Positions 3,401 through 28,801 are shown, counted from the whole stretch's first letter. The stretch: 63,230 bases of DNA, filler included, from Octopus bimaculoides (GCF_001194135.2; 4 parts of 3 records of this genome joined end to end with filler, not necessarily neighbours in it), one strand, 5' to 3'. Numbers and translations are program-made. Notes: generated by a model from the sequence alone, not told the origin.

Positions 3401-4343
3401 GAGACAATGAAGGACTGAGGAATGAAGAGAGAAAATCAATTCCTGTTTAGGATTGTGTTGTTGTTTATTTTATGTTGAGGATTATGCTTGTGTCATTGGC
3501 AAAGAGCATTAAGAAATATATGGAATCCACCCTATTTTAGACTCAACAATGCTTTTAGGCTTTTATTATTTGAACAAAGTACTTACTTTTCATCAACATT
3601 TATATTATATGACAGGATATTGACTTCGTAATTTGAGAAATTTTACTGATAATGAAATTTAAGCCGTGCTTGTGAAAATAACCTTAGCCAGAAGGAGATG
3701 CATAAATACTAGAAATTACATGAGTATGAATACATAGAAATTTAAAGAAGGCGGGGAAAAATATCACAGTTTTTCGACACACGGATTTTCAAGTTATATA
3801 ACATTTTAGAAAAAAAAAATAACAAAAAAAAAATTTACTGATTTGAACGAAATCCAAATACTAACAAACAGTTGAGCATCCGTATCTCATATTATAAAGC
3901 AGTAGATATAAGCTTGTCCATGGGGGAATTACGTATTAAATGGATATCGTCACGGAATTTATCCGTTCGTATCAATTGTACAAATGTGGACGTATTTATT
4001 TTATTCAATGCAGTTACAGAATACAAACGCCCAACTGGAACAATATTGCACTGTCACAGAGTAAGTTTGTTTTATTCTTGAATATCGTAACTCAAATTCA
4101 GTATTATATACACTATATATATATATATATATATATATAGTTGCGCATCCTATACATCAATACATATACACTCTCATGCACACTGACTATACAGCAATAC
4201 ATAATTTTCGATGTTAAATTTTACACACACACACACACACACATACTCATACACACACTCATACACACACTCATGCATACATGCTTACATATATACATAC
4301 ATACACATATATATGTATAAATGTATATATATACACATATTAC

Positions 4344-4686
4344 GCAGGAGTGGCTTTGTGATAAGTAGCTTTCTTACCAACCACATGGTCCCGGGTTCAG
4401 TCCCACTCCGTGGCACCTTGGGCGAGTGTCTTCTTACTATAGCCTTGGGCCGACCAAAGCCTTGTGAGTGGATTTGGTAGACGGAAACTGGAAGAAGCCC
4501 GTCGTATATGTATATGTATGTATATGTCTGTGTATGTATATGTTTGTGTGTGTGTTTGTCCCCCCCCCAACATCGCTTGACAACCAATGCTGGTGTGTTT
4601 ACGTCCCCATAACTTAGCGATTCGGCAAAAGAGACAGATAGAATAAGTACTAGGCTTACAAAGAATAAGCTCTGGGGTCGATTTGC
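4344..4686 (+). mobile_element. SINE family A (head, internal TA/TG repeat, tail running into a gap)
   Basis: GCAGGAGTGGCTTTGTG...ACCTTGGGCGAGTG...CAACATCGCTTGACAACC...GGGGTCGATTTGC. Confidence 0.85.
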
Positions 4687-5584: not shown

Positions 5585-5920
5585 ACCAATATTAATTTCT
5601 TATATTGATACAGGGACATGAACTAAGAACATAAAGAGACATAAAGAAATACTCAAAGAACTTTATTTCTCAACCTCATCAATTCTGTTCACATTTGTCA
5701 CCGAACTAATATAATTCCCAGTGCTGAATTTCCTACTTCTGCGATTTTTCTTTTTTTTATACAAGGAGTAAATTATAAGGAATAACTCAACCTGGGATAG
5801 AAACTACCCTGGAAATGCCACCGTAGAAATATACTAGACTAATATAGAATATTGGTAAATACATCAGAATAACAGATAAAACTGAACACACATCTTTCAA
5901 TAACCAGTCAGTTACTACAT
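5585..5920 (+). promoter_or_regulatory. SLC17 upstream module copy b
   Basis: TTTCTTATATTGATACAG (AG 5612-5613), GAACTAAGAACATAAAGAGACATAAAG, TATTTCTCAACCTCATCAATTCTG; 600-940 bp upstream of ATG 6523. Confidence 0.6.
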
Positions 5921-6522
5921 TTTTTGCCTGATTTTCGCGATATGCAACGACTCTTATTCATTGTGGACAAAGAAAATCTGAAATTGTGTGGTAGCAATTT
6001 CTTTCCCGAACATTACTGGTAATAACACAATTCCCAAAATCCGTGTTGTTTGTAATTTACCGTTAAAACGCTTCGTTTTCACCTTATTTCTTGACTGTGT
6101 TCTTACTTTGGCAGGATTCTTTCTATTAGAAAGCAAAAGCGAGATTAAATATGTTACCAAACGATCATAGCTGATGCTTATCGACACAAACCTTTGTAGG
6201 ATTTGCGAAAGGGCGCATCTGTTTATCGATAACATAATATACCAAATTACTGAGAAGTAAATTTCTACTAACGATATCTTGATATTAACTCTTAGCGATC
6301 ACATTTGATCTAATCAAATATATACTTTACAGATCATACAAACACCATTTATTTTATGACATGAAGCTGGGAACAGGAAATAAACAGGTCGTAAATTTTT
6401 GACGACTGCCTTTTTGTGTTGATTCCATATTTAGAATCTACACCACACAACACTCAACGTACTTTCACACAAACATCAAACGAAATATTGTGAGAATCAA
6501 TGAAAATTTGATTAAAAAAAGG

Positions 6523-7362
6523 ATGTCTAAGTGTACCAGCTGGATTAAGCGCTGTTCTTCATGTCGATGGAGACTATGTTATGCCTGTGCTGGTGTTAGT
6601 CTTCTGATGCAAACATTAACAGTTGATCTGAGCATGGCTTTTGTTTGTATGTTGAAAACAACCAATCGTACAATTGAGGAAGTTAACTCTACAGCAAACA
6701 ACCAAGATTGTCCTGGTCTGGATAATTATTATTCAATAAACCCAAGTTTTGAAGGCGAATTCGAATGGGGTGACACGTTACAATCACACATGTTGGCTGG
6801 TTTCTTCTATGGATATATAGGAACTAACATTCTGGGTGGGATATTGGCAGACAAATATGGTGGGAAAAGAATTGTCGGAACGTCAGTACTTGCAGCATCA
6901 ATTTTGGCCATTCTTCACCCAAGTTTATCACGAGTTAGTGGCTACTTTACTCTTGTCCTAAGGATATTAACAGGTATGGCATCAGGATCAATATACCCGG
7001 CAATTCAGTCCTTATTTGGACGCTGGTGCCCTCCACAAGAAATTGGTTCGTTGGTTGCAATAACATTTGCTGCTCAATACCTAGGTAGTATTTTATGTCT
7101 CTCAATATCAGGTTATCTTTGTGTTTATGGATTTGATAATGGGTGGGGCCCTATATTTTACATATTTGGTGGATTATCGTTGGTGTTTAGTTTTGTGTGG
7201 TTTTATGTAGTTTACGATAATCCAGACACCCATCCCACTATCAGCGAAGAAGAATATTCTTACTTAAATAGAACTATAGTGAGTGGAAAAGTAGTTAAAA
7301 AAGTACCCTGGAAACGGCTGCTCTCTTCAAAATTCGGCAGCACACCTGAATTTCAAATATAA
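6523..7362 (+). pseudogene. SLC17A5-like: truncated intronless SLC17/sialin-like transporter (N-terminal half only)
   Basis: MFS motifs GGILADKYGGKR, FDNGWGPIFYIFG, YDNPDTHPTISEEE. Homology to the paralogs stops after VPWKRLLSS (~7329), then 10 unrelated codons and TAA. The C-terminal half is not seen (gap 7507-8072). ATG 6523 aligns with the paralog starts; the ORF-track GTG at 6490 does not. Confidence 0.8.
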
Positions 7363-7464
7363 CTAAAAGTATAGGAAAAAATTATATTCAGGTTACACTG
7401 CGGCACACCTAACATAGTCTCGTGGCACACAAGTGTGTCGTGGCATACCAGTTGCAGAGCACTC
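7330..7464. mobile_element. terminal fragment of a hAT-like DNA transposon/MITE
   Basis: GCGGCACACCTAA...CGTGGCACACAAGTGTGTCGTGGCATACCAGTTGCAGAGCACT resembles the subterminal GCGGCACAC repeats and ...GGTTGAGAAACACTG ends of hAT elements; only one end is present. Confidence 0.55.
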
Positions 7465-8177
7465 GTCTTTTTTACATTTTCATAGTTTTTCAATCTTAAA
7501 ACTATCNNNNNNNNNNNNNNNNNNNNNNNNNNNNNNNNNNNNNNNNNNNNNNNNNNNNNNNNNNNNNNNNNNNNNNNNNNNNNNNNNNNNNNNNNNNNNN
7601 NNNNNNNNNNNNNNNNNNNNNNNNNNNNNNNNNNNNNNNNNNNNNNNNNNNNNNNNNNNNNNNNNNNNNNNNNNNNNNNNNNNNNNNNNNNNNNNNNNNN
7701 NNNNNNNNNNNNNNNNNNNNNNNNNNNNNNNNNNNNNNNNNNNNNNNNNNNNNNNNNNNNNNNNNNNNNNNNNNNNNNNNNNNNNNNNNNNNNNNNNNNN
7801 NNNNNNNNNNNNNNNNNNNNNNNNNNNNNNNNNNNNNNNNNNNNNNNNNNNNNNNNNNNNNNNNNNNNNNNNNNNNNNNNNNNNNNNNNNNNNNNNNNNN
7901 NNNNNNNNNNNNNNNNNNNNNNNNNNNNNNNNNNNNNNNNNNNNNNNNNNNNNNNNNNNNNNNNNNNNNNNNNNNNNNNNNNNNNNNNNNNNNNNNNNNN
8001 NNNNNNNNNNNNNNNNNNNNNNNNNNNNNNNNNNNNNNNNNNNNNNNNNNNNNNNNNNNNNNNNNNNNNNNNATCAATGTTTATTTTGATAACATTTTTG
8101 TTTAACTTTCATTAATAAAACGATGAGACATTGTGCACTTTCGTGTTATATATACATACATTTATAAAACGATTTTG

Positions 8178-8226
<49 letters not shown>

Positions 8227-8274
8227 CACACACACACGTGTGCGTATGTGTTTATATGTATAAAAATGTAAAGA

Positions 8275-8547
8275 CCTCTTTCGATCACGAATGACCATGG
8301 GATTGCATCCAGGAAGTTCCACCCTGGAAGACCAGCGGTCGCCCATGCATACCATGTTGCCTAATAGAAAAGAAAAGCCGATACAGCTTGGCACCAATGA
8401 CGCTTCAACTAATTTTGTACAGGCAAGTGGATTGGAGCCACATGAAATAGTATTTTGCGCAAAAGCCCACAGCCTGGTCCAGGAATCGAAATCATAACCT
8501 CACGACTGGAAGCCCAACGCTTTAGACACTAAGCCAAGCGCCTTCAC
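8275..8547 (-). mobile_element. tRNA-derived SINE family C (degenerate)
   Basis: Aligns by eye with 50185-50541 (GGAAGACCAGC.GTCGCCCAT...GATACAGCT...GGAATCGAA...GCCTTCAC). Confidence 0.7.
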
Positions 8548-9852
8548 ATTGCATGTAATTATTTGTTTAAGAATTTCAATTCTTCCTAAAATATGCCTGA
8601 CTTTATCGCTTTGCTATATTTTCATTTCTTCGAAATCAATCTCCTTAATCTTAACATCTTAATCTTTCCCGCCTTCAGGAAAATGCAGGAAGGAATTGCA
8701 TCAAATTTTGTCATTGAAAGTTACAGACACCAGAAGAGGGCGGCATTGCATCGTGCCAAAAACCTCAACATTGTCATCAGGATGCAGGAGCAGATACTCC
8801 AATAACGCGAACTATTTCAAGAGCTCAGCACTTCAATATTCTTCCCCCAAAAGCTTGAGAGACGTACGTGGGGTGGATGTAGGTGACTTTAAAACAGAAC
8901 CGTGTCTTTTTCTGTCAAGAGATTTCGGATAAATCTACCTCGCGGCAGGAAACGCAGATGAGGGCAGCAACATCGAACTCCTTCATTCACCGAATGCCAC
9001 CTATCAGAGGAAATAAATTTTTCATGCTCTCATTTTTTTTGCATGAGAAATAGAATAACCAATAATTAAATTGTATATGTATAGAATATAGAATGTATCG
9101 ACTTTTCTTTTGCATAATGACAGATTTTGTGATTGACAGGTTTTCGTGTCGCAGAAATACTGTCCTTTCAAGTCGACGGATGGAGCAGTGGGCCGACCAG
9201 AGCCCGGAATAGATCATATAGAATTAAATGCATAAGATTAAAGAAAGAGAACGATCAGCGACAATTAGCGATAACATCACATACACAGACCCATATAATG
9301 ATATTCCAATGTAATAAAAGTGGGATAATGAAGATCATTGGTTGCAACGTTTACTCTTTATCACGTATATGAACAGGGTGTGAGAAGAATAAAAGTTTAG
9401 AATCAAATAAACACTAACGCCAATCTTAGCAATAATAAACATTAAGAGAGGGGAAAAAATAGCCTTGAAATATATGTAATTAATTTATATACACATTCAC
9501 AGCCATAGATAAGGATTCGGCGGAATATTCTGCGCTGTATATATATCAATGTAAAATACGTTGATGAAAACAAAGTTAAGGTTTTATGGAGATGTTAAAG
9601 ACGATTAACAATTGAATATTAGATATTTTATTATTACCTAAGCTGGAGAAGTGCATACGCTAAACGGATTCCAGCGATGATGAGGATTAGAGAATGATAC
9701 AAATTGTTCAGAATCTGTCGTAGTTCCGGCATTGCATATGAGGAGTCAGGAGCAATTTGAGAAAAATGACAAAGAAGGGGTAAGTCAAAAGAGGCATACA
9801 CGCGAATACGAATACACAGATATACAAAACATCTGGATACACAGATCGATTC

Positions 9853-9896
<44 letters not shown>

Positions 9897-10269
9897 AGAC
9901 CAAAAGTGTACGTACGCCGCTATATATAGCCCTGTTTATAATTATACCATATGTTATATATTTATTATATCTTGCTACTGTGTCGACTAAGGTCTCCGTT
10001 GATAGGCCGCTGGTATTTATAGAGTGTTAGGCACTTCCGGTATGCAAATTAGGGAAATGGCTAAAATTTGCTCTGTTTATAATTATACCATATGTTACAC
10101 ACACACACACATAAATATACATATATTTATACGTATGTATGTATGCATGCTTTGTATAATAATAATTATTATAATCTATTTATTATTTTAAAAATCCTCG
10201 TTAATTGATTTATGTCGATTCATGTTTATATATATCTTTCTCTGTATGTGTGCATAAATATGTGAAGCA

Positions 10270-10560
10270 ATCAGTTAATATTAATTTTTTTATATTGATC
10301 CAGGGCCTTCACAAGGGATCCATTCTTGCCTGAATTAAAAGCATCAAGAAGCGGAACGAATTACCCGAATCTTCGTTCTCAGCGTCACCAACTCTGTTCA
10401 ACGATATTTGTCATTGAACTAATATTTCCTACTGCGGGATCTCCGGTTTCTGAACGGGTGGATTACATGGCATCACTCAACGGGCAATAGAAACTACATC
10501 GTTAACACCAAACACACAAGTTTTGTGAACTAATATTAATTATACTTAAACGAATAAAAG
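10270..10560 (+). promoter_or_regulatory. SLC17 upstream module copy c
   Basis: TTTTTTTATATTGATCCAG (AG 10302-10303), TTCTCAGCGTCACCAACTCTGTTC, TTGAACTAATATTTCC. A second acceptor-like TTTCAG (AG 11255-11256) lies 45 nt before ATG 11302. Confidence 0.6.
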
Positions 10561-11301
10561 AAATTTGACCATATTGCAGACAGAGCTATTTTGGAATTTA
10601 CTACCGCTATCTATGACGTATGCACTGGTCTTTTACAATGAAATGTTATTATAAAACCCAAAGAACTAACTGGAATTGAATACACATTTTGTAATACTTA
10701 TTTGGATCTCACATATCCTTCAGCTGTTTCTTATGCACATGTAAAGACTCAGATTTACAGTAGATACAAAAGGATTTGGATGTGATGGTGTTTATTCCTG
10801 TCCCAAGCAGTCAAGTTATTACTTAATCCCTGAATCTGTATTCTCTGTAGCTGACTGTTACAGCTCTACACCTTTACTTATTTTATTGCATTCTCGCCTT
10901 AACTTGACATTTTCTATTCCCTAAATAAAAAAAGAAACTCAGTTAACAAAACCCATATCGTTACTTGAATTTATAGTAATTGCAAACTAAGATACATGTT
11001 TCTCGATAAAAAAAAGTGTACTAATTTACTGTGACCTATAATTCTAACTGTACTTTACAAAAGACATTTTGTTCATAATTTTGGACGAACACATTTTATT
11101 CTGTGCAAAGCACACTTGAGAAAACAAACATCTGTTATATAATTAATTAATTTCAGAGAAGACAATAACGCAACCTAATCAAAGGTATAGATTATTGAAA
11201 TACAACACTTGTTTGATAATGTATGTTAGATTTCTCATCGATTAACATAATTTCAGGTTCTAAACGTCAATCGAGTCTGCAAAACCTGAAGTTCAAGAAA
11301 A

Positions 11302-12762
11302 ATGTCGAGGTTTATCAGATGGTTTAAGCATTACACTTCATGTCGATGGAAATTATGTTACGCTTGTACTGTTTCTTTTCTTCTCATGCAAACATTAAGA
11401 GTTGATCTAAGTATGGCTTTTGTTTGTATGTTGAAACCACTCAATCGTACAACTGAGGAAGTTAACATTACTGCAAACAACCAAGAGTGTTCTGCTGCTT
11501 TAGACAATCATTCTATGAATCAAAACTATGAAGGAGAGTTCGAATGGAGCGATACTCTACAATCGAATATGTTGGCAGGGTACTTCTATGGATATATAGC
11601 AACTAATATTTTAGGTGGTGTATTGGCAGATAAATATGGTGGGAAAAGAGTTCTTGGAGGTTCACTTCTTTTAGCATCAATTTTGACCATCCTTCACCCA
11701 AGTTTATCTCGAATTAGTGGTTACTTTACACTTTTTCTAAGGATATTAACTGGTATGGCATCGTCAGCGGTGGCCCCATCAATTCAGTCCTTATTTGGAC
11801 GTTGGGGCCCTCCAAACGAAATTAGTTCTTTGATTGGGTTTTCATTTGCTGGTCAATTTATAGGTAGTATTGTAGGTCTATCAATATCTGGTTTTCTTTG
11901 TGTGTATGGATTTGATAATGGATGGGGTTCTATATTTTATATATTTGGTGGAATATCGTTGGTATTTAGCTGTGTATGGTTTTACATTGTTTATGATAAT
12001 CCAGACGTCCATCCCACTATCAGCGAAGAAGAACGTTCTTACTTAAATAGGACTATAGTAAGTGAAAACGTAGTCAAGAATTTGCCTTGGCGACGACTGA
12101 TTTTTTCACCTGCCGTATGGGCTATTAATTTTGGTATGTTTTCTTATGGCTGGACCGATATATCTTTCCAAGTATTGCTCCCTCTATATATGAAAAAAGC
12201 CTTAAACGTTAATACAACAGCGAACGGTTTATTGTCGTCTGTTCCTTCCATTGGACAAATCATTGCTCTACCGTTGTGTGGAAAATGTGCAGATTTTATA
12301 CGTTCGAAGAAATATCTGTCAACTCGTTCCGTACGAGTTTTATTCCAAACATTTTCTATGGTGGCTTCAGCATGTCTGCTGATTGCCATAGGATTCCTTA
12401 GATGTGACCAAACCATTCTAATAACACTACTTTTGTTTCTCAGTGGTATAACTATATCATTTACCAGTGGTGGTGCCCTCATCAATAACAATGACATTGC
12501 TCCAAGTTATGCTGGTATTGTATTTGGATTTGCTAACACGTTCACATCAATAGCCGGCTGCATTAGCACCGTATCTACTAACGCTCTTACACCAAACGGC
12601 ACACAAAAAGAATGGCAGATCACGTTCGCCTTGTACGCTGCTATTTGTGTATTTGGTGCAATATTTTTTGCAATATTGGCAAAAGGAGAGATCCAATATT
12701 GGACAGCTTCAGAAGTACCTGGCTCATCTGTGCATCCTAGCAATAGGAGTACAAAAGGATGA
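11302..12762 (+). CDS. SLC17A5-like: SLC17 family (sialin-like) MFS anion transporter, intronless, 486 aa
   Basis: Uninterrupted ORF with about 12 hydrophobic segments; TM1 LRVDLSMA, GGVLADKYGGKR, GWGSIFYIFG, LLPLYM, DIAPSYAG..FG.ANTF, W...F; NRT/NIT sequons in loop 1. Family call is firm; orthology to SLC17A5 is not established. Confidence 0.93.
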   Translation: MSRFIRWFKHYTSCRWKLCYACTVSFLLMQTLRVDLSMAFVCMLKPLNRTTEEVNITANNQECSAALDNHSMNQNYEGEFEWSDTLQSNMLAGYFYGYIATNILGGVLADKYGGKRVLGGSLLLASILTILHPSLSRISGYFTLFLRILTGMASSAVAPSIQSLFGRWGPPNEISSLIGFSFAGQFIGSIVGLSISGFLCVYGFDNGWGSIFYIFGGISLVFSCVWFYIVYDNPDVHPTISEEERSYLNRTIVSENVVKNLPWRRLIFSPAVWAINFGMFSYGWTDISFQVLLPLYMKKALNVNTTANGLLSSVPSIGQIIALPLCGKCADFIRSKKYLSTRSVRVLFQTFSMVASACLLIAIGFLRCDQTILITLLLFLSGITISFTSGGALINNNDIAPSYAGIVFGFANTFTSIAGCISTVSTNALTPNGTQKEWQITFALYAAICVFGAIFFAILAKGEIQYWTASEVPGSSVHPSNRSTKG

Positions 12763-12911
12763 GGTGAGTAAATTCCTTGATCGTTTTGTCTAGCTAAAAC
12801 ACCAAGATCATTCAGTAGTACATAACTGTATGCTTTATTTTTGCCTGCCTGCATTCCTGTCTGTGTCTGTGTCTGTGTCTGTGTCTCTCTGTCTCTGTCT
12901 CTGTCTCTGTC

Positions 12912-12948
<37 letters not shown>

Positions 12949-13539
12949 ATATATATGAAGAAAAAAGCTGTCATTGTTAGTAAGTCGTAAAGTTGTGTTG
13001 CACTTATAGAATGATGCAATATGCGCAAATCAATCAGGAAAAAAGATTTATGTGTGGAGGTATCTGATTGTCTCTATACTTACCCCTTCTTTGTAATATT
13101 CACTTGAATATAATGATCGGATTGCTTGATATGCAGTGACAATTGTGATCAATGGTAGCTGGGGCTGCGACAGAAATTGAATGACTTGCATCGTTTAGTA
13201 GCTCTCATCTTCATTTCAATCCACTTCTGCTGACGTAACGTCAAAAAATTCAACATTCAGGAGTAAAGACCAAACATCTTTCACATTTCCCCACAAACTC
13301 TATTCACCTCGATTTATTAACGTGTTTTGCATTGATATAAAACCCGGATATATATATATATGTGTGTGTGTGCGCGTGTGTGTATAGAAATTAAATAACA
13401 AGATAGATTTGGTATTAAACCTTATCCTGTACCACGTTCGTTTCGACCGGTCCTACTATCTCAACACAAACACAACCAATCGACTTATTTTAGTCCAAAA
13501 CATTAATCACACAGACACACAAACACACACACACACATA

Positions 13540-13713
13540 TATATACATATATACGACGGGCTTCTTTCAGTTTCCGTCTACCAAATCCACTCACAAGGCT
13601 TTGGTCGGCCCGAGGCTATAGTAGAAGACACTTGCCCAAGGTGCCACGGAGTGGGACTGAACCCGGAACCATGTGGTTGGTAAGCAAGCTACTTATCACA
13701 CAGCCACTCCTGC
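13540..13713 (-). mobile_element. SINE family A head
   Basis: Almost exact reverse complement of 4344-4510. Confidence 0.85.
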
Positions 13714-14341
13714 GCCTATAGACTCTGTTCCATTAAAGTGTTTACATTTTATGTAAAACCACAAAACATTCATAGTAAGCGTGTCTACTTTCCTGCATAC
13801 ATGCATATAAATTAATTACGTATAAATTCTATAAAAGCTCAGATGACACGTACTTAATTTTAATTCATGCTCTGGCATACCTCTTTATGCACTGGCCATG
13901 CTCTTTATTGGTACCAGAAATTTGATCTCAAATGTAATGTCATTAACTTGTGATCTGAAATGTTTTGCACTTACACTCAGTGCATATTGCACAATAAAGG
14001 TGACAGCGTGCTATTAGTCAACGTTGCTGTTTCGCGGGCAATGGGAAGCCGGATGTATTTTGTTATATATATATTTTGGGATGAAACCGCCCCAAATTCT
14101 CGACGTCACCTTGGGAGATGCAGAGTGGTTGGTACGGGACGGCCAGCGATGGAGAGCAGTGGTGGACCTGGTCGGCTCTACGCATGATGACGCCCCTGGG
14201 ACCACTAAAATGGGATGATCCCAACCACATCAAGCAAAATCATGAAACAAAGCCAGTCACTTCTTAAATTACCACAATTTATTCGGATTTGTTGTTATTT
14301 GTTGTTGGGTCATTTTTCTTTCTGCTGAGGGTGGAATCAAC

Positions 14342-14560
14342 ATTTTCTGTGTTTATTTTTGTTTCTCGGAAATTAATCAATTTTTCCGCGCGTGCCTTTT
14401 GTACCGCGTTACGAATTTTCGTGTTTATTTTTGTTTATCAGAAATTCATCAATTTTTCGGCGCGTGCCTTTTGTACCGCGTTACGAATTTTCTTGTTTAT
14501 TTTTGTTTCTCAGAAATTCATCAAATTTTCCGCGTGTGCCTTTTGTACCGCGTTACGAAT
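14342..14560. repeat. 72-bp minisatellite, 3 copies
   Basis: GTACCGCGTTACGAATTTTC recurs at 14401, 14473 and 14545 (period 72). Confidence 0.9.
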
Positions 14561-14619
14561 TTTCTTTATTTTTTCTGTTGTGCAAATACTTGACTGAGAT
14601 ATGTGTTTTATTTTTCAGG

Positions 14620-15480
14620 TTACGTCTACTAATTCAAGCCCGTCTTGCTACTACCAAATAAAAGAAAGTGACTTCCTGAAATATGTCTAAAGGAATCAAA
14701 CCGACCCCCATCCCTCACAAAAGTCCAGAAATGTCTTTTTACACTTACAAAAATATCAAGAACGATTTTCTTATTTTGGTAACTATTCCGTGCACAGAAA
14801 TAATCATAACATTGGAAAATTCACAGACTGTAATCCAGAATATGAACACATAAAACCCCCCCCACTTCTTTCAGAAAAAAAAACGACAAAAAATATCAAG
14901 AACTACAAGAACAATAATGGTGATAAAATGCCTTCTTTTATTCTTGTCATTTGGATTTTTTAAAAGCAAACATTGAAAACATTTGACATAGACATTGTGT
15001 TGGAAAGTAGAACAAAAAGGATTTATACTGTTTCTAGTGTAGTGAAAAAAAAAATGGTAATTTTTGGGACAGAGGATAATCGGTACCATCAAATTTATAA
15101 CTAGTTGGGTACTTTATTTTATCGCTCCCGAAAGGAAGAAAGGCAAATTCGAACTCAGAACATAAAATGTCGGAGAAAAGTTCACAAATAATTTTTATCG
15201 ACGCTTTAATGATTCTGCATTCCTCTCCTCGTTTTCATATGACATCGTTTTGGCTATCTCTCAAATTGTGAGGTCAGTTTCAATTTACAATTACAATACA
15301 TTTCGGAAAGCAGAGAACTATTCCGAACATGTTATACTATAAATAACTGAACATGAAGAAAATATATGAACCACGCACACACTAAATCGATAATTATATA
15401 AAAACAAAAGAATTAAAAGCAATCGTTTCAAATATGTACTAAACAAATTGGGAAACCTACATACACACACACACACACGC
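14620..15480. repeat. duplicated 3' flank block, copy 1 (downstream of the minus-strand gene at 16114)
   Basis: Colinear with 20260-21020: CTGAAATA.GTCTAAAGGAAT, TTCCGTGC, GCACAGAAATAATCA, TTGGAAAAT.CACA.ACTGTAAT.CAGAATA, GGTACTTTATTT.ATCG...CCGAAAGGAAG. Confidence 0.75.
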
Positions 15481-15689
15481 GCGCGTGGGTGGTAACATCA
15501 TAGGGAAGTTGGGCGTAAATGTTGTAAAGTCATTTTTAAACAAAATAAATATAAACAAAAAACCGATAAAGCATATTTATTTTATCGAACGAACGCAGTA
15601 AAATCAATTCTCAACTCTTTTAGAGACGGTCGTTCATTACAAACAAAAACAACTAAACATCAACAGCAATAATGGTTTCATTTTTTGGC

Positions 15690-15880
15690 ACAGCGCTTAT
15701 TTTATCGATCCTCATAATTGGATGAAAGGCAAAACCAACCTGGATAGAATTTGAACTCAGAAAGTGAAGACGGATGGAAACTGCTAAGCATTTTGCCCGT
15801 CGTGCTAACGGTTCTGCCAGCACGCTGCCTTAATAATAATAATGGTTTCAAATTTTGCCTCAAGGACAGCAATTCTGGGT
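15690..15880 (-). mobile_element. SINE family B
   Basis: TTTGAACTCAGAA...CTAAGCATTTTGCCCGTCGTGCTAACGGTTCTGCCAGC is the reverse complement of the 23583 head. Confidence 0.75.
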
Positions 15881-16113
15881 TAGAAAGTAAATAAGAAACA
15901 TCTTCTAAGTTCATATCGATTATATGTGAAAGTAAAGTTTTGATTAAATGGCAAGATTTCAAAAGAATTTTTAAAATGTCCTTGCTAGTGTTTTATATTT
16001 TAATTTTTCTAATATACTCACCTATACCGTGGAATTTCTACGGATCCCGCTAGTTTTCAAAAGATTAGTAAAATTACAGAAGATATTAATATATACATTC
16101 ATGTGTGCTATTG

Positions 16114-17577
16114 CTAAGGTATTAAGTTAACATTCACTGTTTTTGAATTTTCAGGCGAATCAGTTCCCTCTATACGTGCCCAATCTTGGATTTCTCCTCT
16201 GGCCAATATCGCAAACAATATTGCACCAACTACACATACAGAAGCAAACAAGGCTAACACGATCTGCCATTCTTCTTGTGTACCATTTGGAGTGAGAGCT
16301 TTTGCAGACACCGTACTAATACTGCCAGCTGCTGTGCCAAAAGCATTAGCTATTCCAAATACAACGCCAGCGTAATTTGGGGCAATGTCAATGTTGTTGA
16401 CGGTAACACCACCGCTGGAAAAGGATAGAGTTATACCACTAAGAAACAAGAGGATACTTATTAAAGTGTTTTCGCCACATTCGAGGAATCCTATCGCGAT
16501 TAACAGACTTGCTGAACCTAACATAGAAAAAGTGTGGAATAAAACTCGAACAGAACGAGTTGACAGATATTTCTTTGAACGTACAATATCTGCGCATTTT
16601 CCCCACACCGGTAAAGCAATTATTTGTCCAACTGCAGTGACAGACGACATTAAACCGTTGGATGTTGTATTAACGTTTAAAGCTTCTTTCACATAAAGAG
16701 GTAACAACACCTGGAAAGATAGAGTAGTCCAACAATAAGCACACCAACCAAAGATGATGGCCCAAACTGCAGATGAAGAGAACAGCCGTTTCCAGGGCAC
16801 ATTTTTAACTACTTTTTCACTCACTATAGTTCTCTTTAAGTAAGAATATTCTTCTTCGCTGATAGTGGGATGGGTGTCTGGATTATCGTAAACTACATAA
16901 AACCACACACAACTAAACACCAACGATAATCCACCAAATATATAAAATATAGAACCCCATCCATTATCAAATCCATACACACAAAGGTAACCTGATATCG
17001 AAAGACATAAAATACTACCTAAATATTGAGCAGCAAATATAATAGCAATCAATAAACTAATTTCTTGTGAAGGAGCCCAGCGTCCAAATAAGGACTGAAG
17101 TGCAGGGTAGGTCGGCCCCGATACCACACCGGTTAATATCCTTAGAACAAGAGTAAAGTAGCCACTAACTCGTGATAAACTTGGGTGGAGAATGGTCAAA
17201 ATTGATGATGAGAGAAATGAAGCTCCCAGAACTCTTTTTCCACCATATTTATCTGCCAATAATCCACCCACAATGTTAGTCCCTATATATCCATAAAAGT
17301 AACCAGCTAACATGTTTGATTGTAATTTATCACTCCATTCAAACTCTCCTTCATAATTTCGATTTAATGAATAATTATTCAAAGCAGAACAACGATGTTC
17401 ATTTGCAGTAAAGCTAACTTCCTCAGTCGTACGATTGGGTGTTTTCAACATACATACAAATGCCATGCTTAGATTAACTCTTAATGTTTGCATCAAAAGA
17501 CTAGCAGTAGCACAGGCATAACATAGTCTCCAACGACAAGAAGAATAACGCTTTATCCAGAGGGCGAATTGAGACAT
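16114..17577 (-). CDS. SLC17A5-like: SLC17 family (sialin-like) MFS anion transporter, intronless, ~487 aa
   Basis: Uninterrupted ORF; TM1 LRVNLSMA, GGLLADKYGGKR, DIAPNYAGVVFGIANAFG, EEWQIV. ATG 17577 aligns with the paralog starts (the ORF track starts at TTG 17592). Confidence 0.93.
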   Translation of the reverse strand: MSQFALWIKRYSSCRWRLCYACATASLLMQTLRVNLSMAFVCMLKTPNRTTEEVSFTANEHRCSALNNYSLNRNYEGEFEWSDKLQSNMLAGYFYGYIGTNIVGGLLADKYGGKRVLGASFLSSSILTILHPSLSRVSGYFTLVLRILTGVVSGPTYPALQSLFGRWAPSQEISLLIAIIFAAQYLGSILCLSISGYLCVYGFDNGWGSIFYIFGGLSLVFSCVWFYVVYDNPDTHPTISEEEYSYLKRTIVSEKVVKNVPWKRLFSSSAVWAIIFGWCAYCWTTLSFQVLLPLYVKEALNVNTTSNGLMSSVTAVGQIIALPVWGKCADIVRSKKYLSTRSVRVLFHTFSMLGSASLLIAIGFLECGENTLISILLFLSGITLSFSSGGVTVNNIDIAPNYAGVVFGIANAFGTAAGSISTVSAKALTPNGTQEEWQIVLALFASVCVVGAILFAILARGEIQDWARIEGTDSPENSKTVNVNLIP

Positions 17578-18139
17578 TTTTGTTAACTTCAAGTTCCAAT
17601 GATTTTCACAATGTTTATTTTTAAGAGATGTGTGATGTAATTTTTAAATATTGAATGAAACAGTAAAAGACAGTCACCAAAAATTAGCAACTTCTTACTT
17701 TCCTGTGCGCAGCTTCATTTCATAAAATTAATGATGGTTGTTTGGTCTCTAAAGTGTATATTTAACCAAATGAAATCTGATGTTCAAACATTTTGATTAA
17801 GATATCTTAATGTCAATATATTTCAGAGTAGCTTGGTACATTTCATTATCGATAAATTTAGACATGTAACCCTGTAAAGCTTAGTGTTAATATATATTAG
17901 TTATCACTGCTTTAGTAAACTATTTTGTTTATTTTTTACTATCACGTTAAGGCAAAAATACAATCAAGAAATAAGACGAATAAAAATGCAGAGTTTGACA
18001 GTAAATTATAGAGAACGCAAATTCAGGAATTGTGTTACAATCTGTAAAGTTTGGCTCTGGAATTAATACCGTCACTTCCAAATCTTCTCTGTCTGCTGTA
18101 AATCTGAAACCTGGAGATACATAAGAAACAGTCGAAAAA

Positions 18140-18530
18140 TATGTGGTAACCAACTAGTTTTTAAACGATATATGTTCAATTCCACAATTCCACAATTCCA
18201 CTTAGTTCTTTGATGTATTCAGTTATACTCTGTGTTACTTCAGTATAAGTCTGTGGGGACGTTTACAATGCAGTTCCTATTTAAGGTTGAGTCATTCCAA
18301 GTTATTCATTCCTTGTATCAAAAATACGACAGAAACTGAAGATCCAACTGTGGGAAATATTAGTTCAACGACAAATATTTTTGGGAAGAATTGGTGAAGC
18401 TGGGAAATAAAGATTGTTGAGTATTCCTTTATGTCTCTTTGTGTTCTTAGTTCTGGCAAGAATCAATTGATTGTGCATTCTCTGAAATGTGAGATCGTGT
18501 ATCAATGAAAGAAATCAATATTAGTTAATG
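18140..18530 (-). promoter_or_regulatory. SLC17 upstream module copy d
   Basis: Reverse complement contains GAACTAAGAACACAAAGAGACATAAAG, TTGAACTAATATTTCCC and GGAATGACTCAACC. The homologous acceptor reads AC, with an alternative TTTCAG 15 nt further on. Confidence 0.6.
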
Positions 18531-18542
18531 GACTTAAAAACA

Positions 18543-18620
18543 TACGAGAGGTGCTCAAAATTTCCTGGCTTTTGGTAAAAGAAAACACAGGAGGATCAGT
18601 TATGATTTTATTCAGCATAG
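18543..18620. mobile_element. possible mariner-type terminal fragment
   Basis: TACGAGAGGTGCTCAAAATTTCCTGGC resembles mariner TIRs that start TACGAGG; short and single-ended. Confidence 0.35.
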
Positions 18621-18663
18621 GCTATGAACGAGATGTGACACCCCTTTTAATTCTGATATTGCC

Positions 18664-19005
18664 ATGGGTTCAAGTGACTCCGCCCAAGTTATAGATTTGG
18701 TTGGTGCATACCTCCGTAAGTGTCTTAGTAGTGAACTCCCTGAACTGCAGGATGGTCATTACAAAGATGAAACATTATTTATTATAACTAAAGACTATCA
18801 TAGAAAGAATGAGGCAGAAAGATCAGATAATTCTTCAAAAGCTTTAACCTAGGGCTCACTTTCGAATAAGATATGAAAATAATTAACTTCTTAGATGCTA
18901 CACTAGAACTTAAATCTGGTTTGTATTATCCCTATAGAAAACCAAATGTTACAAAGTATGTGAACAAATCCTCTAATCATCTCCCAAATGTATTAAAGTC
19001 ATATA
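18664..19005 (+). mobile_element. Penelope-like element reverse transcriptase fragment (degenerate)
   Basis: MGSSDSAQVIDLVGAYL, GHYKDE (degenerate GLYRDD) and [10 protein letters not shown]...YYPYRKPN...SNH are typical PLE RT/thumb motifs; frame disrupted. Confidence 0.7.
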
Positions 19006-20259
19006 TATACATACACATATACATATACATATACATGTCTGGATTATTACGTAGATATTATATATCAATGAAGAAAAAAAAAGGTCGTTGGGATTTGAAG
19101 AAAAACTACTTATTTAGCGGTTCGGAAAAAGAGACCGACAGAATAAATCCTGCGGTCGATTTGTTCGACTAAAGACGGTGCTCGAGTATGGCCGCAGTCA
19201 AATGAATGAAACAAGTAAAAGAATGCAAGAGTAATATATATCTATTTGTGTGTGTGTGTATTTGCGTATATTTTTATAGGGTTATCTATGCATTGCATTT
19301 ATGTTTTAGTGAATAACTACGTCAATGTATGTGTGAGATTGTATGTATGTGAGTGTATTAAAACCGTGTATATACAATACTACGTATACAAAATTGTATG
19401 TCGGTAGTGAATAATGAAACGTACTTACAGCGTACTTACAGGATATCTGCGTTCTGTGGTTCCATTGGATGAAGTATATGCATCCACATTTGTACTAGTG
19501 TATACATTTAGTGATTAAGTTGTTGTTTCTTAATATGTTTATCTCCAGTGGATAATCCCATTTGTGCTAGCTACGAGATTTAAATGATCAACACTTCATT
19601 GCATCTAGAGGTCGTTCAGATGAGTTACTTCTTTCTCAAAATATTCTAAGCGGTTGGTTTCCTGGTAGATTTGTTTAAATATAAAATAAATGAATTATCA
19701 ATTATATTGTGTGAAAAAAGTGACATTTTATTTCACATTCTTAAACCTTTTTGAGTCTCATGTTCTTGACATTCATTTTGTGACTGGCCATCAGAACTGC
19801 GACTGTTAAATCTGCTTGTTCTAGATTCAGCTGTCACTAACATTTCTCATATTACGAAGTGAAGATCTTTTGATGTTATTTTATATTATTCACTTTTAAA
19901 GTTTCATTTGTTGTATTTTGTGATATTGTCTTTCATACATAGATTATAAAGTGCTTTGTACTTTCGATGAGTCAATTACAATGGTTTTGTTGGTTACACG
20001 TAGGCCATCGCATTTATGTATGGTTCGCTTTTATTTTAATATCAGTGTGTACCCCCAAAATTAGTGTCCCTTTTCTTTGTTGAAGATCAAGTCAATTTTT
20101 TCAAAGTTCAATTTTGTTTCCTAGAAATTCCTTATGTTTTTGTACGTATGTACTTGTTGCATTAGGCTATGAATTTTCGTATTCACTCTTTCTCCTGTTG
20201 AAGCCGTGAAACTTCTTCAGCAATTGCTTGGTATGGGCGTGTATTTCACTGTTTCCATG

Positions 20260-21020
20260 CTACAATTACTGACTCAAGCTATTTTCCCACTACCCTAATA
20301 AAATAGACATTCTGAAATACGTCTAAAGGAATAGAGTAAACACGTTCAGAAATATCTATTTACACAAACAAAAGTGTAAAAGCGATATTCTAAACTTTCT
20401 TTGTAATAATTCCGTGCGAAACGGCACAGAAATAATCAGGATGTTGGAAAATCCACAAACTGTAATTCAGAATAGGAATGACTTTTAGGAAAATAACAAC
20501 AACAACATCAAGAACAACGATAGTGTTATATAATGTTTCCTTTTATTATTACCATTTGGATCTTTTCAAGCATACAACAAAAACGTTTGACATAATGGCG
20601 TTATAAAGAAAAACAAAACAGATTGAAATTGTTGCTAATTCAGGTAAAAGACCTATCATTTTGAGGGGAGATGATAATGAGTACGATAGAATTTGGTACT
20701 TTATTTGATCGATACCGAAAGGAAGCAAAGCAACTTTGAATTCAGAGCATAAAAAGATAGATTTTAGCGAATCTTGAAAGGATTCTTCTCCTCCCTTTTA
20801 TATGTGAGGTTCAATTTCCATTTATAATTCTAATAAAACGCAAAATACCACGGGGCCATTCCGGAGAAGTTTTACCATGACTAACTGGAGATGGTAAAAT
20901 TATTAGTTAGAATAAACACGCTGTAAATGATTACATAATAAGGCAACCTAATTAAAACATATAAAATTATTTAAAATATATACCAAAACAGATAGAGTAA
21001 CATACGCACACAAACACATA
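20260..21020. repeat. duplicated 3' flank block, copy 2 (downstream of the pseudogene at 21686)
   Basis: Direct repeat of 14620-15480. The offset of about 5.6 kb matches the stop-to-stop distance of the two minus-strand genes (5572 bp). Confidence 0.75.
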
Positions 21021-21486
21021 GGTGGGAACCTGCCAGATCGTTTGGATCGGAATATTCCACAAATTTAGTCTCCATGACGCTATAAAACAGTTACGTATGT
21101 TTATATGTTACCTTATGTTACCGTATCTGTTCATCGATGTATATAACTACACACGCTAACATGAATTAGCATTCGCATATTCGCACGCACAAAAGTTACA
21201 GTGTTAACATTGCCCTGGCGCATACCAAATATATTATACATAGAGACGCCATTACAAATGAATACAGAAAATGTATAGATACATCCAAAGCCATACAGAC
21301 ACGCACGTATATACCACTCCCAATAATGCATAATATAAAAATTCTTAATCTCAGAAATATAGGAACCCCACGTACGAGGGGATCGCGAAAAGTCCCTGCC
21401 TTTAAGTGTATAGCGAGAGGCTTGGCTGTAGGCCTAAACTTCCGCTGCGATACTTATGATATATATATATCACAAGTATCGCAGTA

Positions 21487-21522
<36 letters not shown>

Positions 21523-21595
21523 TGTATGTATGTATGTATGTATGTATGTATGTGTGTGTGTGTGTGTGTGTGTGNNNNNNNNNNNNNNNNNNNNN

Positions 21596-21650
<55 letters not shown>

Positions 21651-21685
21651 TGTGTGTGTGTGTGTGTGTGTGTAGCAAAAGAATG

Positions 21686-23138
21686 CTAAGCAATTTTATT
21701 TGTTTGTGTGTCGCTATGATTAACGGAAGATCCAGGCTCTTCTGAACTTGCCCAATCTTGTATTTCTCCTCTGGCTAATATTGAATACAAGATTGCTCCA
21801 GATACACATATGGCAGCCAACAATGCAAACACAATCTGCCATTCTTCTTTAGTGCCGTTTGGTGTTAAGGCCTTCGTAGATAAGGGACAAATGCTGCTGG
21901 CTATTGTTCCGAAACTGTTTGCAATTCCATATACAGTACCCGCATATTTCGGAGCAATGTCTTTGTTATTCACGTGAACACCACCGCAAACAAATGACAT
22001 TGTTACACCACAGAGAAATAAGAGAAAACTTATTAGAATGGTTTGGTCACATCTGAGGAAAGTTATGGCAATTAATATGCATCCAGAAAAAATCAGAGAA
22101 AAGTCTTGGAATAAAACTCGAACACAACGAGTTGACAGAAATTTCTTGGAAAGTACGAAATCTGCCAGATTCCCACATAACGGTAGAGCAATAACTTATC
22201 CAACTGAATGGGCAGACGACATTAAACCGTTGGACGTTGTTTTAACGTTTAAGGCTTCGTTCATATATAGAGGAAGCAATACTTGTAACGATGTTTGCAT
22301 CCACTTAGAACTTAGCGAAGTTAATTGCCCAAACTGCAGGTGAAGAAAATAATTTTTTCCATGGTACATTCTTAACTGCCTTTTTGCTTGTTACGGTTGT
22401 ATTTAGATAAGAACGTTCTTCATCGCTGATAGTCGGGTGGGTGTCCGGATTATCATAAACCACATAAAACCATACACAGCTAAACAACAACGATAATCCA
22501 CCAAATACATAGAATATGGAACCCCATCCATTATCAAAGCCATAAACAGAAAGAAAACCTGATACTGAATGGCCTACGAATGTACCTAAGAATTGACCAG
22601 CAAATGAAAACCCAATCAATGAACTAATTTCCTATGTAGGTCCCCAACGTCTAAATAGGGAATGAATTGCTGGGTATATAGGTCCAGATACCATACCTGT
22701 TAAAATTCTAAGAACAAGCGTAATGTAACCACTAATTCGGGATAAACTTGGGTGAAGAACAGACAGAAGAGAGGCTAAGATTAGTGAACCCGCCACAACT
22801 CTTTTCCCACCGTATTTATCAGCCAATAAACCACCCAGAATATTAGACATAATATATCCATAAAAGTACCCGGCCAACATGTTCGATTGTAACGTGGCAC
22901 TCCATTCGAATTCTCCTTCAAAATTTTGGTTCCTTGAATAATTATCTGCACCGGAACAATGTTCGTTGTTTACAGAAATGTTAACTTCCTCACTTGTACG
23001 ATTGGGAGTTTTCGACATACAAACAAATGCCATACTTAGATCAACTTTGAATGTTTGTATCAGTATACAAACAATAAAACAGGCATAGCACAATCTCCAG
23101 GAACAACAACGCTTTGTATACTGGATAAACTTCGACAT
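21686..23138 (-). pseudogene. SLC17A5-like: SLC17/sialin-like pseudogene, full length but disrupted
   Basis: Colinear with the paralogs. In-frame TAG at 22634-22632, a ~5-nt deletion frameshift near 22300-22307 (TTC TAA G TGG vs TTT TCT TAT GGC TGG), and in-frame TAA at 22198-22196. Confidence 0.88.
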
Positions 23139-25904: not shown

Positions 25905-26204
25905 CTTATGTATATATATATACATACATGCATGTATGTATGTATGTATAAGTTTTTAATTTAATTTAATTCTATATATAATTTTTTATATTTTTGCTTT
26001 ATTAAAATATATTTTACATTATTGAACTTGTTTTATAGATATTGATCTGCACTTGTCCTTTTCACTTCTATATTGTCCCAGGATGCTGTTTACGAGATCT
26101 ATTGTTCCACCATACCTTGATAGGCTTGCTTTTGATGTGATTTGATCTTTGCGATGTGATGTTGATTGAGAAACAAAATATATAGTAGTCTACTTCTAAC
26201 ATTG

Positions 26205-26520
26205 AAACAATGCAAGTTAACAAATGCGGAGACCCTCGATGTGGAACTTGTAAAACCATTGACGAGGGTGGAAAAAAATTCCTTTAAAAATAATGAGATT
26301 TTCAAAGTTCATGCAAACGTGAATTTCAAAACAAAAAACTTAACTTACTGTGCAACTTGCCTACAATGTAAAGAATACTACATTAGTAAAACCGGAATGG
26401 GACTATATGATAGAGCTTGGATACATAAGCAACAAATTAAAGATGCCTCTGCCAGAAACACCACTGGCAGTGAACACTTTGCATCATGCGGAAACGGAAA
26501 ATCACAATCTTCCTCTTCTT
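26205..26520 (+). mobile_element. Penelope-like GIY-YIG endonuclease fragment 1
   Basis: KCGDPRCGTCKT (Cys knuckle, shifted frame), then KTKNLTYCATCLQCKEYYISKTG...R...HKQQI. Confidence 0.75.
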
Positions 26521-26599
26521 TAAGTTATGACCGCACGACAGACATTTCCAGAAATATAAAGAGCCATGAGGAAATTTGAAACTATCATACGTAACAATA

Positions 26600-27297: not shown

Positions 27298-28801
27298 CAG
27301 AATAAGATTCCCATAATATGAATATAAGACAATACACAGATAAATAAATGGAATTAAATAACTATATACATTAACAAAATAAAATATATCAAATTAAATT
27401 AATACAAAAAATAGAAAGAAAAGAAAAAGTAAGTAGATATAAACAAATGAATAAAATAAAAAAAAGTAAATTACATGAACATGTATAAATAGGGGATACT
27501 GATAATGCAGGCACATTCCCACACACACTTACTAAACATAGACACACAGGTATATACGCATGAACAAATAAAGATACATACAATAGGAATACAAAATGGC
27601 AGATCATTAGTAAGGAGAGACACACAAAACTGGCAACATGACCATCCCAAAATACAACAATATATATATATATANNNNNNNNNNNNNNNNNNNNNNNNNN
27701 NNNNNNNNNNNNNNNNNNNNNNNNNNNNNNNNNNNNNNNNNNNNNNNNNNNNNNNNNNNNNNNNNNNNNNNNNNNNNNNNNNNNNNNNNNNNNNNNNNNN
27801 NNNNNNNNNNNNNNNNNNNNNNNNNNNNNNNNNNNNNNNNNNNNNNNNNNNNNNNNNNNNNNNNNNNNNNNNNNNNNNNNNNNNNNNNNNNNNNNNNNNN
27901 NNNNNNNNNNNNNNNNNNNNNNNNNNNNNNNNNNNNNNNNNNNNNNNNNNNNNNNNNNNNNNNNNNNNNNNNNNNNNNNNNNNNNNNNNNNNNNNNNNNN
28001 NNNNNNNNNNNNNNNNNNNNNNNNNNNNNNNNNNNNNNNNNNNNNNNNNNNNNNNNNNNNNNNNNNNNNNNNNNNNNNNNNNNNNNNNNNNNNNNNNNNN
28101 NNNNNNNNNNNNNNNNNNNNNNNNNNNNNNNNNNNNNNNNNNNNNNNNNNNNNNNNNNNNNNNNNNNNNNNNNNNNNNNNNNNNNNNNNNNNNNNNNNNN
28201 NNNNNNNNNNNNNNNNNNNNNNNNNNNNNNNNNNNNNNNNNNNNNNNNNNNNTATATATATATATACACATATATATATACACATATATATATACATACA
28301 TATAAGGTAACGAACAAAGGAAACCTTATTTCAAAGGAGTGTGCAAAAAATTCAATTCACTGGTACGTTGGTTGAATACAATAGAACAATGGGTATAAGG
28401 TAAATTCGAAAAGCTAAATTAAATAGAGCGATACAAATGACAATACAATAATATAATATAATATAATATAATATAATTTAATATAATATCATATAAAATA
28501 ATATAATATAACAAACAATTATTAAAAAAACCCAAAAGAGCAAATTTTTAAAATTCAACATTATTATATAGATTAAGATAACAAAACTTAAAGATACACA
28601 CGCACGCACACACACACACACACATACACACATACACACACATATATATACATACATGTACATATATATATATATACATACATATACACACATAAGAACA
28701 TACAGACACATACACACACATATATATATTCACATATTCATATAGATATACATACACATGCATAAACCCACATATACCTACATAGGCACACATATATACT
28801 A

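Follow-up and report, generated by a model that had tools for sequence, protein, structure and literature searches.

In human sialin (SLC17A5), the glutamates E171 and E175 couple protons, and single E-to-Q mutants lose about 95% of transport (PMC9858498, the source of all the residue roles for human sialin used below). An expansion of sialin genes has been reported for Octopus bimaculoides, according to the passages of two reviews (PMC6110919, PMC6062618) that cite Albertin 2015, and is frequently counted among those gene-family expansions to which the neural complexity of cephalopods may be due. In molluscs, retroposition followed by tandem duplication has been described for the nicotinic receptor genes, whose intronless daughters group together in the tree and include some pseudogenes (PMC6896357). 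The locus considered here is a cluster of intronless SLC17-like genes found in a window of 63,230 nucleotides of O. bimaculoides DNA, i.e. the whole stretch that was analysed, in which four parts of three records are joined end to end with filler; four paralogous copies, named A to D, lie between positions 6523 and 23138. The expansion so reported almost certainly concerns this very family and set of loci; full-text literature searches combining SLC17/sialin or intronless/retrogene with octopus returned nothing on the gene structure of the cluster. Taken together, the data make it quite probable that these genes are a retrogene family derived from a cephalopod parent, which was multiplied by DNA duplication, evolves by slow birth-and-death and encodes anion carriers of a non-sialin type.

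The cluster belongs to record CM046624.1 of the assembly GCA_001194135.2 (about 2.5255-2.5544 Mb, position 1 of the window being about 2,525,530), a contig of 36,166,163 bp; the 279-amino acid product of copy A belongs to it, and an exact match to copy B comes with the same four gene calls there. Searches by tblastn with copy B or C as the query revealed exactly four SLC17-like loci in the window, in the order + + - -, with 64-79% identity among them at the amino acid level; all four match Pfam MFS_1, with E-values from 1e-15 to 1e-44 (4e-43 for copy B and 5e-44 for copy C). Copies B (11302-12762, + strand) and C (16114-17577, - strand) are intact single-exon SLC17 genes, with uninterrupted open reading frames (ORFs) of 486 and 487 amino acids, respectively; the NCBI model of copy C is also 487 amino acids long, and an in-frame TTG at 17592, taken as the start by the ORF lister, sits upstream of the start at 17577. 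Copy A (6523-7329, + strand) is truncated or disrupted and retains only the N-terminal half, namely codons 1-269 with transmembrane segments (TM) 1-6, while copy D (21686-23138, - strand) is a full-length pseudogene. The arrangement given in the preliminary description, which was made from the sequence alone and listed four single-exon paralogs, two intact and two broken, in the order + + - -, is thus borne out by tblastn, by the ORFs, by the lesions of copy D and by the break in copy A. The assembly gaps at 7507-8072 and 21575-21595 split no recognisable reading frame. NCBI gene models already exist for all four loci and some are wrong, as in the case of copy D, which is annotated as a 341-amino acid protein. 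The window covers one end of a longer tandem array of intronless SLC17 genes on CM046624.1, at least 116 kb long, which runs to at least 2.643 Mb and contains further head-to-tail genes of 497, 493, 492 and 463 amino acids.

Relatives of these genes were sought by a word-indexed search and by HMMER, run exhaustively on 1.84 billion cluster representatives, and the results agree. All the sequences above about 55% identity are from Octopus or Argonauta, or are unnamed transcript contigs nesting among them. At 40-45% there follows a cluster formed by a canonical cephalopod "sialin" gene, represented by P0050 in O. bimaculoides, P0043 in O. sinensis and SLC17A5 in Sepia pharaonis (identical to P0046); the exhaustive search returned no cluster closer than this one, at 45% identity, and other molluscs, nematodes and vertebrate sialin do not exceed 39%. 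In neighbour-joining (NJ) trees the octopod intronless sequences are a single clade (194/200 bootstraps, 97%), which groups as sister to the canonical cephalopod genes (192/200 bootstraps, 96%).

The canonical gene has a very different structure. In O. bimaculoides, P0050 is composed of at least 10 coding exons spread across about 20 kb on CM046603.1, a chromosome other than that of the array, and in the cuttlefish (Sepia pharaonis) the gene spans 116 kb. The limpet (Patella) gene P0051 is likewise split into 10 exons or more, and in the alignment about eight of its junctions coincide with those of P0050; these common intron positions indicate that the multi-exon state is ancestral. Conversely, a single-exon coding sequence, whose span equals 3 x (aa+1), is found in all the 13 clade members inspected, i.e. 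the three gene calls of the window and ten more, from several subclades of O. bimaculoides, O. vulgaris and Argonauta hians. The disappearance of all parental introns, together with the monophyly of the group and its location on another chromosome, makes retroposition of a processed mRNA the best explanation, and we infer from these comparisons a retroposed founder for the intronless clade. A retrocopied founder had already been proposed in the preliminary description, and this proposal gains support from a phylogeny in which the intronless copies form one octopod-only clade and from the multi-exon structure of both the nearest canonical cephalopod gene and the limpet gene. A derivation of the intronless genes from bacteria was rejected, since bacterial MFS matches are just 24-27% identical and the clade nests in animal SLC17.

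The non-coding sequences preceding the copies reveal how the family has grown. The 5' flank of copy A (5620-6522, + strand) is paralogous to that of copy C (17578-18453, - strand): by blastn, 5620-7329 matches 18453-16774 with 74.8% identity over 1740 nucleotides (nt), about 900 of which are upstream of the ATG. The flank of copy C is also paralogous, in part, to those of B and D, and the 5' flank of copy B (10227-11301, + strand) is in part a paralog of the sequences preceding C and D, with matches at 18463-17942 and 24057-23835; the blocks common to B, C and D ahead of their coding sequences are shorter than the one common to A and C. Non-coding 5' flank shared over up to about 900 nt indicates duplication at the DNA level, partly inverted, and not repeated retroposition. 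Family growth by local DNA-level duplication, both tandem and inverted, is therefore established; the shared flanks and the tandem array of at least 116 kb agree on this point with the preliminary description, which had proposed expansion by local DNA duplication. The flank of copy B is conserved with O. vulgaris (86% identity to L003 8563-9627), and that of copy C is 90-94% identical to its O. vulgaris equivalent, compared with about 82-87% for most other alignable intergenic stretches. An acceptor-like TTTCAG/G, a putative site only, is located at 11251-11257, about 45 nt before the ATG of copy B, and is also present in O. vulgaris. Together with the conserved flanks, it is the only hint of the UTR exons that, in the preliminary description, the founder would have gained. 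Consensus-like donors (GAG/GTGAGT) are found at the stop codon of copy B (12760-12770), where the site is not kept in O. vulgaris, and about 95 nt 3' of the stop codon of copy C; they could mark introns in the 3' untranslated region or be chance matches.

The age of the copies was assessed from synonymous divergence (dS) and from the dN/dS ratio (omega), both estimated with the Nei-Gojobori method. Copies B and C are each 94% identical to their O. vulgaris orthologs at the amino acid level, with dS of 0.145 and 0.148 and omega of 0.17 and 0.20, respectively, and both are under purifying selection. Within the window, dS is 0.36 for A and C, which are the youngest pair, 0.56 for B and C, 0.63 for B and D and 0.78 for C and D, with omega of about 0.27-0.31 in these four comparisons. 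Paralog dS is thus 2.5-5 times that of the split between O. bimaculoides and O. vulgaris, and values of 0.36-0.78 against about 0.15 for orthologs imply that the duplications in the window all predate this split. Indeed, the O. vulgaris orthologs of D, C and B lie on OX597837.1 (12.62-12.643 Mb) with order and relative orientation unchanged, and no births after the split were found in the window, where only losses differ. Argonauta has an array of its own on one contig, and its sequences interleave with the Octopus subclades in the NJ tree, which places the founder and the earliest duplications before this far deeper divergence. A tandem array with paralogs of differing age and with pseudogenes is fairly described as birth-and-death, the label used in the preliminary description, and both pseudogenes and species-specific losses are present; the regime, however, is slow. 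The spacer between D and C measures about 10.4 kb in O. vulgaris (L008 14584-20593), where it contains an 87-amino acid gene model, and about 4.1 kb in O. bimaculoides, so that an insertion or a deletion separates the two species.

According to this evidence, the history of the locus would have started with the mRNA of a multi-exon cephalopod "sialin/slc-17.2-like" gene (CM046603.1), which would have been reverse-transcribed and inserted as an intron-free founder before Octopus and Argonauta diverged. The family was then multiplied by tandem and inverted DNA duplications carrying up to about 900 nt of 5' flank, and the copies met different fates, with B and C kept by purifying selection, D lost in O. 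bimaculoides and A reduced to a 5' half-gene.

The loss of copy D can be followed by comparison with its O. vulgaris ortholog, an intact ORF of 487 codons (L008 9737-11200, OX597837.1). On the - strand, copy D carries two nonsense changes, CAG to TAG at 22632-22634 and CAA to TAA at 22196-22198, a frameshift due to a 5-nt deletion at 22306/22307, and an in-frame loss of 6 nt at 23100/23101, which takes away the Arg corresponding to R39 of sialin. The O. vulgaris ortholog is intact at every one of these sites and shares no lesion, so that the inactivation of copy D is confined to the lineage of O. bimaculoides. Nine amino acid changes can be polarised to the O. bimaculoides D lineage, against 21 on the O. 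vulgaris side, and dS and omega between the two are 0.195 and 0.27; with so few lineage changes and this omega, the inactivation looks recent. A gap of 21 N (21575-21595) lies about 90 nt 3' of the stop codon (21686-21688), outside the coding sequence and within the simple-repeat stretch 21484-21648, in the order (GTAT)n / gap / (GA)n. For O. vulgaris, the public annotation gives the D ortholog as P0030 (399 amino acids), which starts 88 codons too late. About 6.3 kb upstream of this ortholog, at L008 3242-3433, a 65-codon SLC17 fragment with 72% identity to residues 325-389 of copy B is the relic of an additional copy.

Copy A, which is 79% identical to C and 72% to B by tblastn, is broken in a different way. 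Its homology to the paralogs stops abruptly at 7329, a point 178 nt ahead of the N gap where the sequence is contiguous, and no GT donor is present at the break; from there unrelated sequence (7330-7506, + strand) replaces it up to the assembly gap at 7507-8072. This segment, checked as a possible transposable element, has no second copy in the approximately 180 kb of octopus loci compared, and no remnant of the C-terminal half was detected after the gap or elsewhere in the window at E<=5, where only chance-level matches were returned. The 269 codons that are kept contain neither stops nor frameshifts, and the Arg equivalent to sialin R57, a substrate-binding residue called essential, is replaced by Thr. 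Copy A is therefore disrupted, whatever the gap contains. The NCBI model of this copy is a protein of 279 amino acids with the stop codon at 7360-7362, and P0049 is identical to it. In O. vulgaris, the 10 kb preceding the ortholog of B contain no counterpart of copy A. Elsewhere in the array, on CM046624.1, the 695-amino acid NCBI "sialin" model P0001 of O. bimaculoides is a full paralog fused with an orphan C-terminal half, which starts in the same TM6-TM7 loop (VPWKRLL) in which copy A is broken; the possibility that this is the missing half of copy A was rejected, because the orphan is closest to P0014 (85%) and is not C-like.

The fold of the proteins is clearly related to that of known SLC17 members. 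In a phmmer search of PDB sequences, copy B matches human sialin with an E-value of 1.6e-92 and 35-36% identity, followed by VGLUT2 (1e-70) and VGLUT3 (2e-65). The AlphaFold model of copy B, with a mean predicted local distance difference test (pLDDT) of 83 and a predicted template modelling score (pTM) of 0.83, has 12 TM and shows low confidence only in the TM1-TM2 loop and in the C-terminal tail; its top Foldseek matches are sialin (TM-score 0.84), then VGLUT2 and the Escherichia coli DgoT. On both homology and model, the intact B and C proteins are SLC17 members and would act as 12-TM anion carriers. The arginines responsible for carboxylate binding, R57 and R168, are kept in the clade and correspond to R33 and R147 in copy B, and to the same residues in copy C: R168 is invariant (29/29 clade members) and R57 is found in 28/29, exceptions being the Thr of copy A and a Lys in copy D and its O. 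vulgaris ortholog. K136, Y119 and N430 are kept as well.

The proton-coupling pair, by contrast, is gone: the position of E171 is occupied by T in all 29 clade members and that of E175 by S in 27 of them (T150 and S154 in copy B). The same T171/S175 pair is present in the multi-exon cephalopod parent; the replacement is thus older than the retrocopy and provides an extra character tying the parent to its daughters, and together with the sister position in the tree it identifies the canonical gene as the likely parent lineage. Other residues have changed too. Among those of the Neu5Ac pocket, Y54 is Q in 28/29 clade members, Y306 is replaced by L, I, V or M, position 298 can be L, H, W or M, N302 is variable and Y301 is mostly kept; in addition, H183 is mostly Q and Y335 mostly S. 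The changes at 54, 306 and 335 are limited to the intronless clade, and the paralogs differ from each other at positions 298, 302, 305, 306 and 411. With kinship ignored, the mean entropy of the pocket sites in the clade is 1.34, against a protein average of 0.93, while in other SLC17 proteins the pocket sites are less variable than the average (1.55 vs 1.78; permutation P 0.003, again ignoring kinship). At the N-terminus, about 12 residues precede the R39 equivalent, and no [DE]xxxL[LI], the N-terminal dileucine lysosomal sorting motif, can be read in them. In the NJ tree, with moderate support, vertebrate sialins group with Lymnaea P0066 and the cluster with cephalopod-specific genes, so that orthology to SLC17A5 was not found.

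Judging from these residues, the proteins are probably not sialic-acid/H+ symporters; most likely they carry carboxylated or other organic anions, through a mechanism unlike the H+ symport of sialin and with a specificity that differs among paralogs. The term sialin-like used in the preliminary description holds as far as overall similarity is concerned (E 1e-92, TM-score 0.84), but does not extend to the proton-coupling glutamates. A further step can be suggested only tentatively, namely that the octopod intronless clade consists of neofunctionalised transporters, which would have inherited a non-proton-coupled core, fixed a new pocket and then diversified the TM7/TM11 pocket positions. If this were true, the octopus "sialin expansion" would not be about sialic acid or the classical vesicular loading of glutamate and aspartate, and its products would be a set of carriers whose substrates are a range of new organic anions, for example metabolites, xenobiotics or signalling molecules.

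Other explanations of the locus were considered. The preliminary description had presented the genes as a fast-turning-over family of recent retro-origin, in which young duplications are quickly gained and lost, and several observations could be read in this way: O. bimaculoides has two broken copies out of four, the lesions of D are not common to O. vulgaris, copy A lacks a syntenic counterpart within 10 kb in that species and other parts of the array contain models that are fused or partial. The births, however, are already contradicted by the youngest pair, A and C, with a dS of 0.36 against 0.145 for orthologs, and intronless members of several subclades are found in Argonauta as well, so that the origin cannot be called recent; nor is the turnover fast, as B, C and D are each syntenic in O. 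vulgaris and omega is 0.17-0.20 for B and C. Such a history is highly improbable. It is also very unlikely that the parent was duplicated at the genomic level and then lost all its introns, either stepwise or by recombination with cDNA, with no retroposed founder. Recombination with cDNA is able to erase several introns together, and the poly(A) tract and target-site duplications of a retrocopy were not found; nevertheless, at least nine parental introns are gone in 13/13 members with no intermediates seen, and the array and the parent are on different chromosomes.

The broken copies could instead reflect a gap-rich short-read assembly, with the 3' half of A hidden in a gap or mis-scaffolded and the lesions of D being sequence errors. 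Six N gaps are indeed present in the window, at microsatellites and with lengths that are estimates only, and the codons kept by A are free of stops and frameshifts. On the other hand, the homology of A ends inside a contig, well before the gap and without a splice donor, the estimated size of the gap (566 nt) is smaller than the approximately 650 nt that are missing, and A has also lost the essential R57-equivalent Arg; in copy D, three independent disabling changes plus an in-frame deletion lie far from any gap. An assembly origin of the defects thus appears unlikely. As for function, the genes might be true sialins that have simply been multiplied, i.e. lysosomal H+/sialic-acid exporters or vesicular aspartate/glutamate carriers, as suggested by the database names "sialin" or "sialin-like", by human sialin being the best PDB match, by the conservation of R57, R168, K136, Y119 and N430 and by the sialic acids reported in cephalopods (PMC10225777). 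This is hardly to be expected in proteins where E171 and E175, each needed for about 95% of transport (PMC9858498), are replaced in 29/29 and 27/29 members, Y54 is Q and Y306 is aliphatic; moreover, the N-terminus is short and devoid of the [DE]xxxL[LI] motif, and the clade groups with invertebrate "slc-17.2-like" proteins, not with the E/E-bearing sialins of Lymnaea and vertebrates.

The retrogene history followed by DNA duplication, with its non-sialin-type carriers, has nonetheless to be read with some points that weigh against it. No poly(A) remnant or target-site duplication was found, and no A-rich tract is present within 700 nt 3' of B, C, D and their O. vulgaris orthologs; such a loss is expected from the age of the family, since only the founder would have carried these marks. 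The trees are of the NJ type only, with the outgroups returned by the searches, and in them the clade falls outside the group composed of the octopus and cuttlefish canonical genes. This position reflects either an origin before the octopod/decapod split, for which decapod copies were not found, or an artefact of unequal rates; when derived residues shared at informative sites were counted to place the clade relative to that split, the parsimony score was 1 vs 2 vs 2, which favours no placement. No decapodiform clade members turned up in the searches, single-exon genes being easily missed by annotation. The true state of copy A hinges on the unsequenced gap, in which its 3' half may survive. 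Finally, the definition of the pocket derives from docking in human sialin, and the functional statement stands on homology.

The remaining features of the window concern repeats and minor reading frames. Antisense ORFs of 101-117 amino acids occur at the same place in copies B, C and D (12144-12497, - strand; 16385-16696, + strand; 22038-22343, + strand) and are read as a by-product of the homology of the sense strands, not as genes. An interspersed repeat of about 200 bp, with 83-91% identity between copies, is found at 184-406, 4305-4557 and, inverted, at 13505-13720, and O. vulgaris has four copies or more in the orthologous region (L003 3464-3812, 12559-12923 and 13329-13890); it resembles a short interspersed nuclear element (SINE) in size, and ARAGORN detected no tRNA-like part in it. 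Between B and C, a 72-bp tandem repeat (14342-14566; 3.1 copies, 92% matches) yields a spurious ORF of 102 amino acids (14289-14597), and its array appears longer in O. vulgaris (L003 16372-16919). The assembly gaps examined adjoin microsatellites (21484-21648, 8170-8240 and 28253-28304) and probably mark unresolved simple repeats, not missing genes. An ORF of 137 amino acids with a CxxC stretch (26166-26579, + strand), considered as a GIY-YIG nuclease of a Penelope-like element, was dropped, as it gave no Pfam match at E<=0.01. No tRNA-like sequences were found.

These results bear on the meaning of the octopus expansion. The expanded genes are probably the descendants of one retrocopy, are old and do not have the residues of a proton/sialic-acid symporter; since key residues of sialin have been lost, speculation on their function based on the name "sialin" is unsafe. 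The most useful new point is therefore that this name is mechanistically misleading for the octopus expansion, and the analysis supplies testable pocket positions and a conserved, selected gene pair, B and C.

Compared with human sialin (PDB 8DWI, 8U3D) and rat VGLUT2, the octopod proteins have the same 12-TM MFS/SLC17 fold, with 35-36% identity, and maintain the TM1 and TM4 arginines, K136, Y119, N430 and a glycosylatable TM1-TM2 loop. Differently from human sialin, they have T/S in place of E171/E175 and mostly Q at H183, are changed at Y54, H298, Y306 and Y335, and possess a short N-terminus without a dileucine motif; furthermore, they are encoded by a single exon, while the vertebrate genes are multi-exon. 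The canonical cephalopod "sialin" (P0050, P0043 and the Sepia pharaonis SLC17A5) shares T171/S175 with the clade, at 40-45% identity, but it exists as a single copy on another chromosome, where its coding exons number at least 10 and extend over 20-116 kb, and it keeps Y54, H183, H298, Y306 and Y335. The "slc-17.2-like" transporters of nematodes and gastropods, after which NCBI names several members of the cluster, also lack E171/E175, having I/Q, I/A, L/Q and similar pairs; they keep the Tyr/His pocket residues, and the one gastropod gene examined, Patella P0051, is multi-exon. At the genomic level, the mechanism is the one described for the mollusc nicotinic receptors (PMC6896357), where an intron-rich parent likewise has intronless daughters in tandem arrays, some of them decayed; the octopus family differs in encoding a transporter and not a ligand-gated channel, in its smaller scale of tens of copies and in being found in octopods only. 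On the evolutionary side, the locus adds a clean, if unsurprising, mollusc case to those in which a retroposed gene was later multiplied in tandem.

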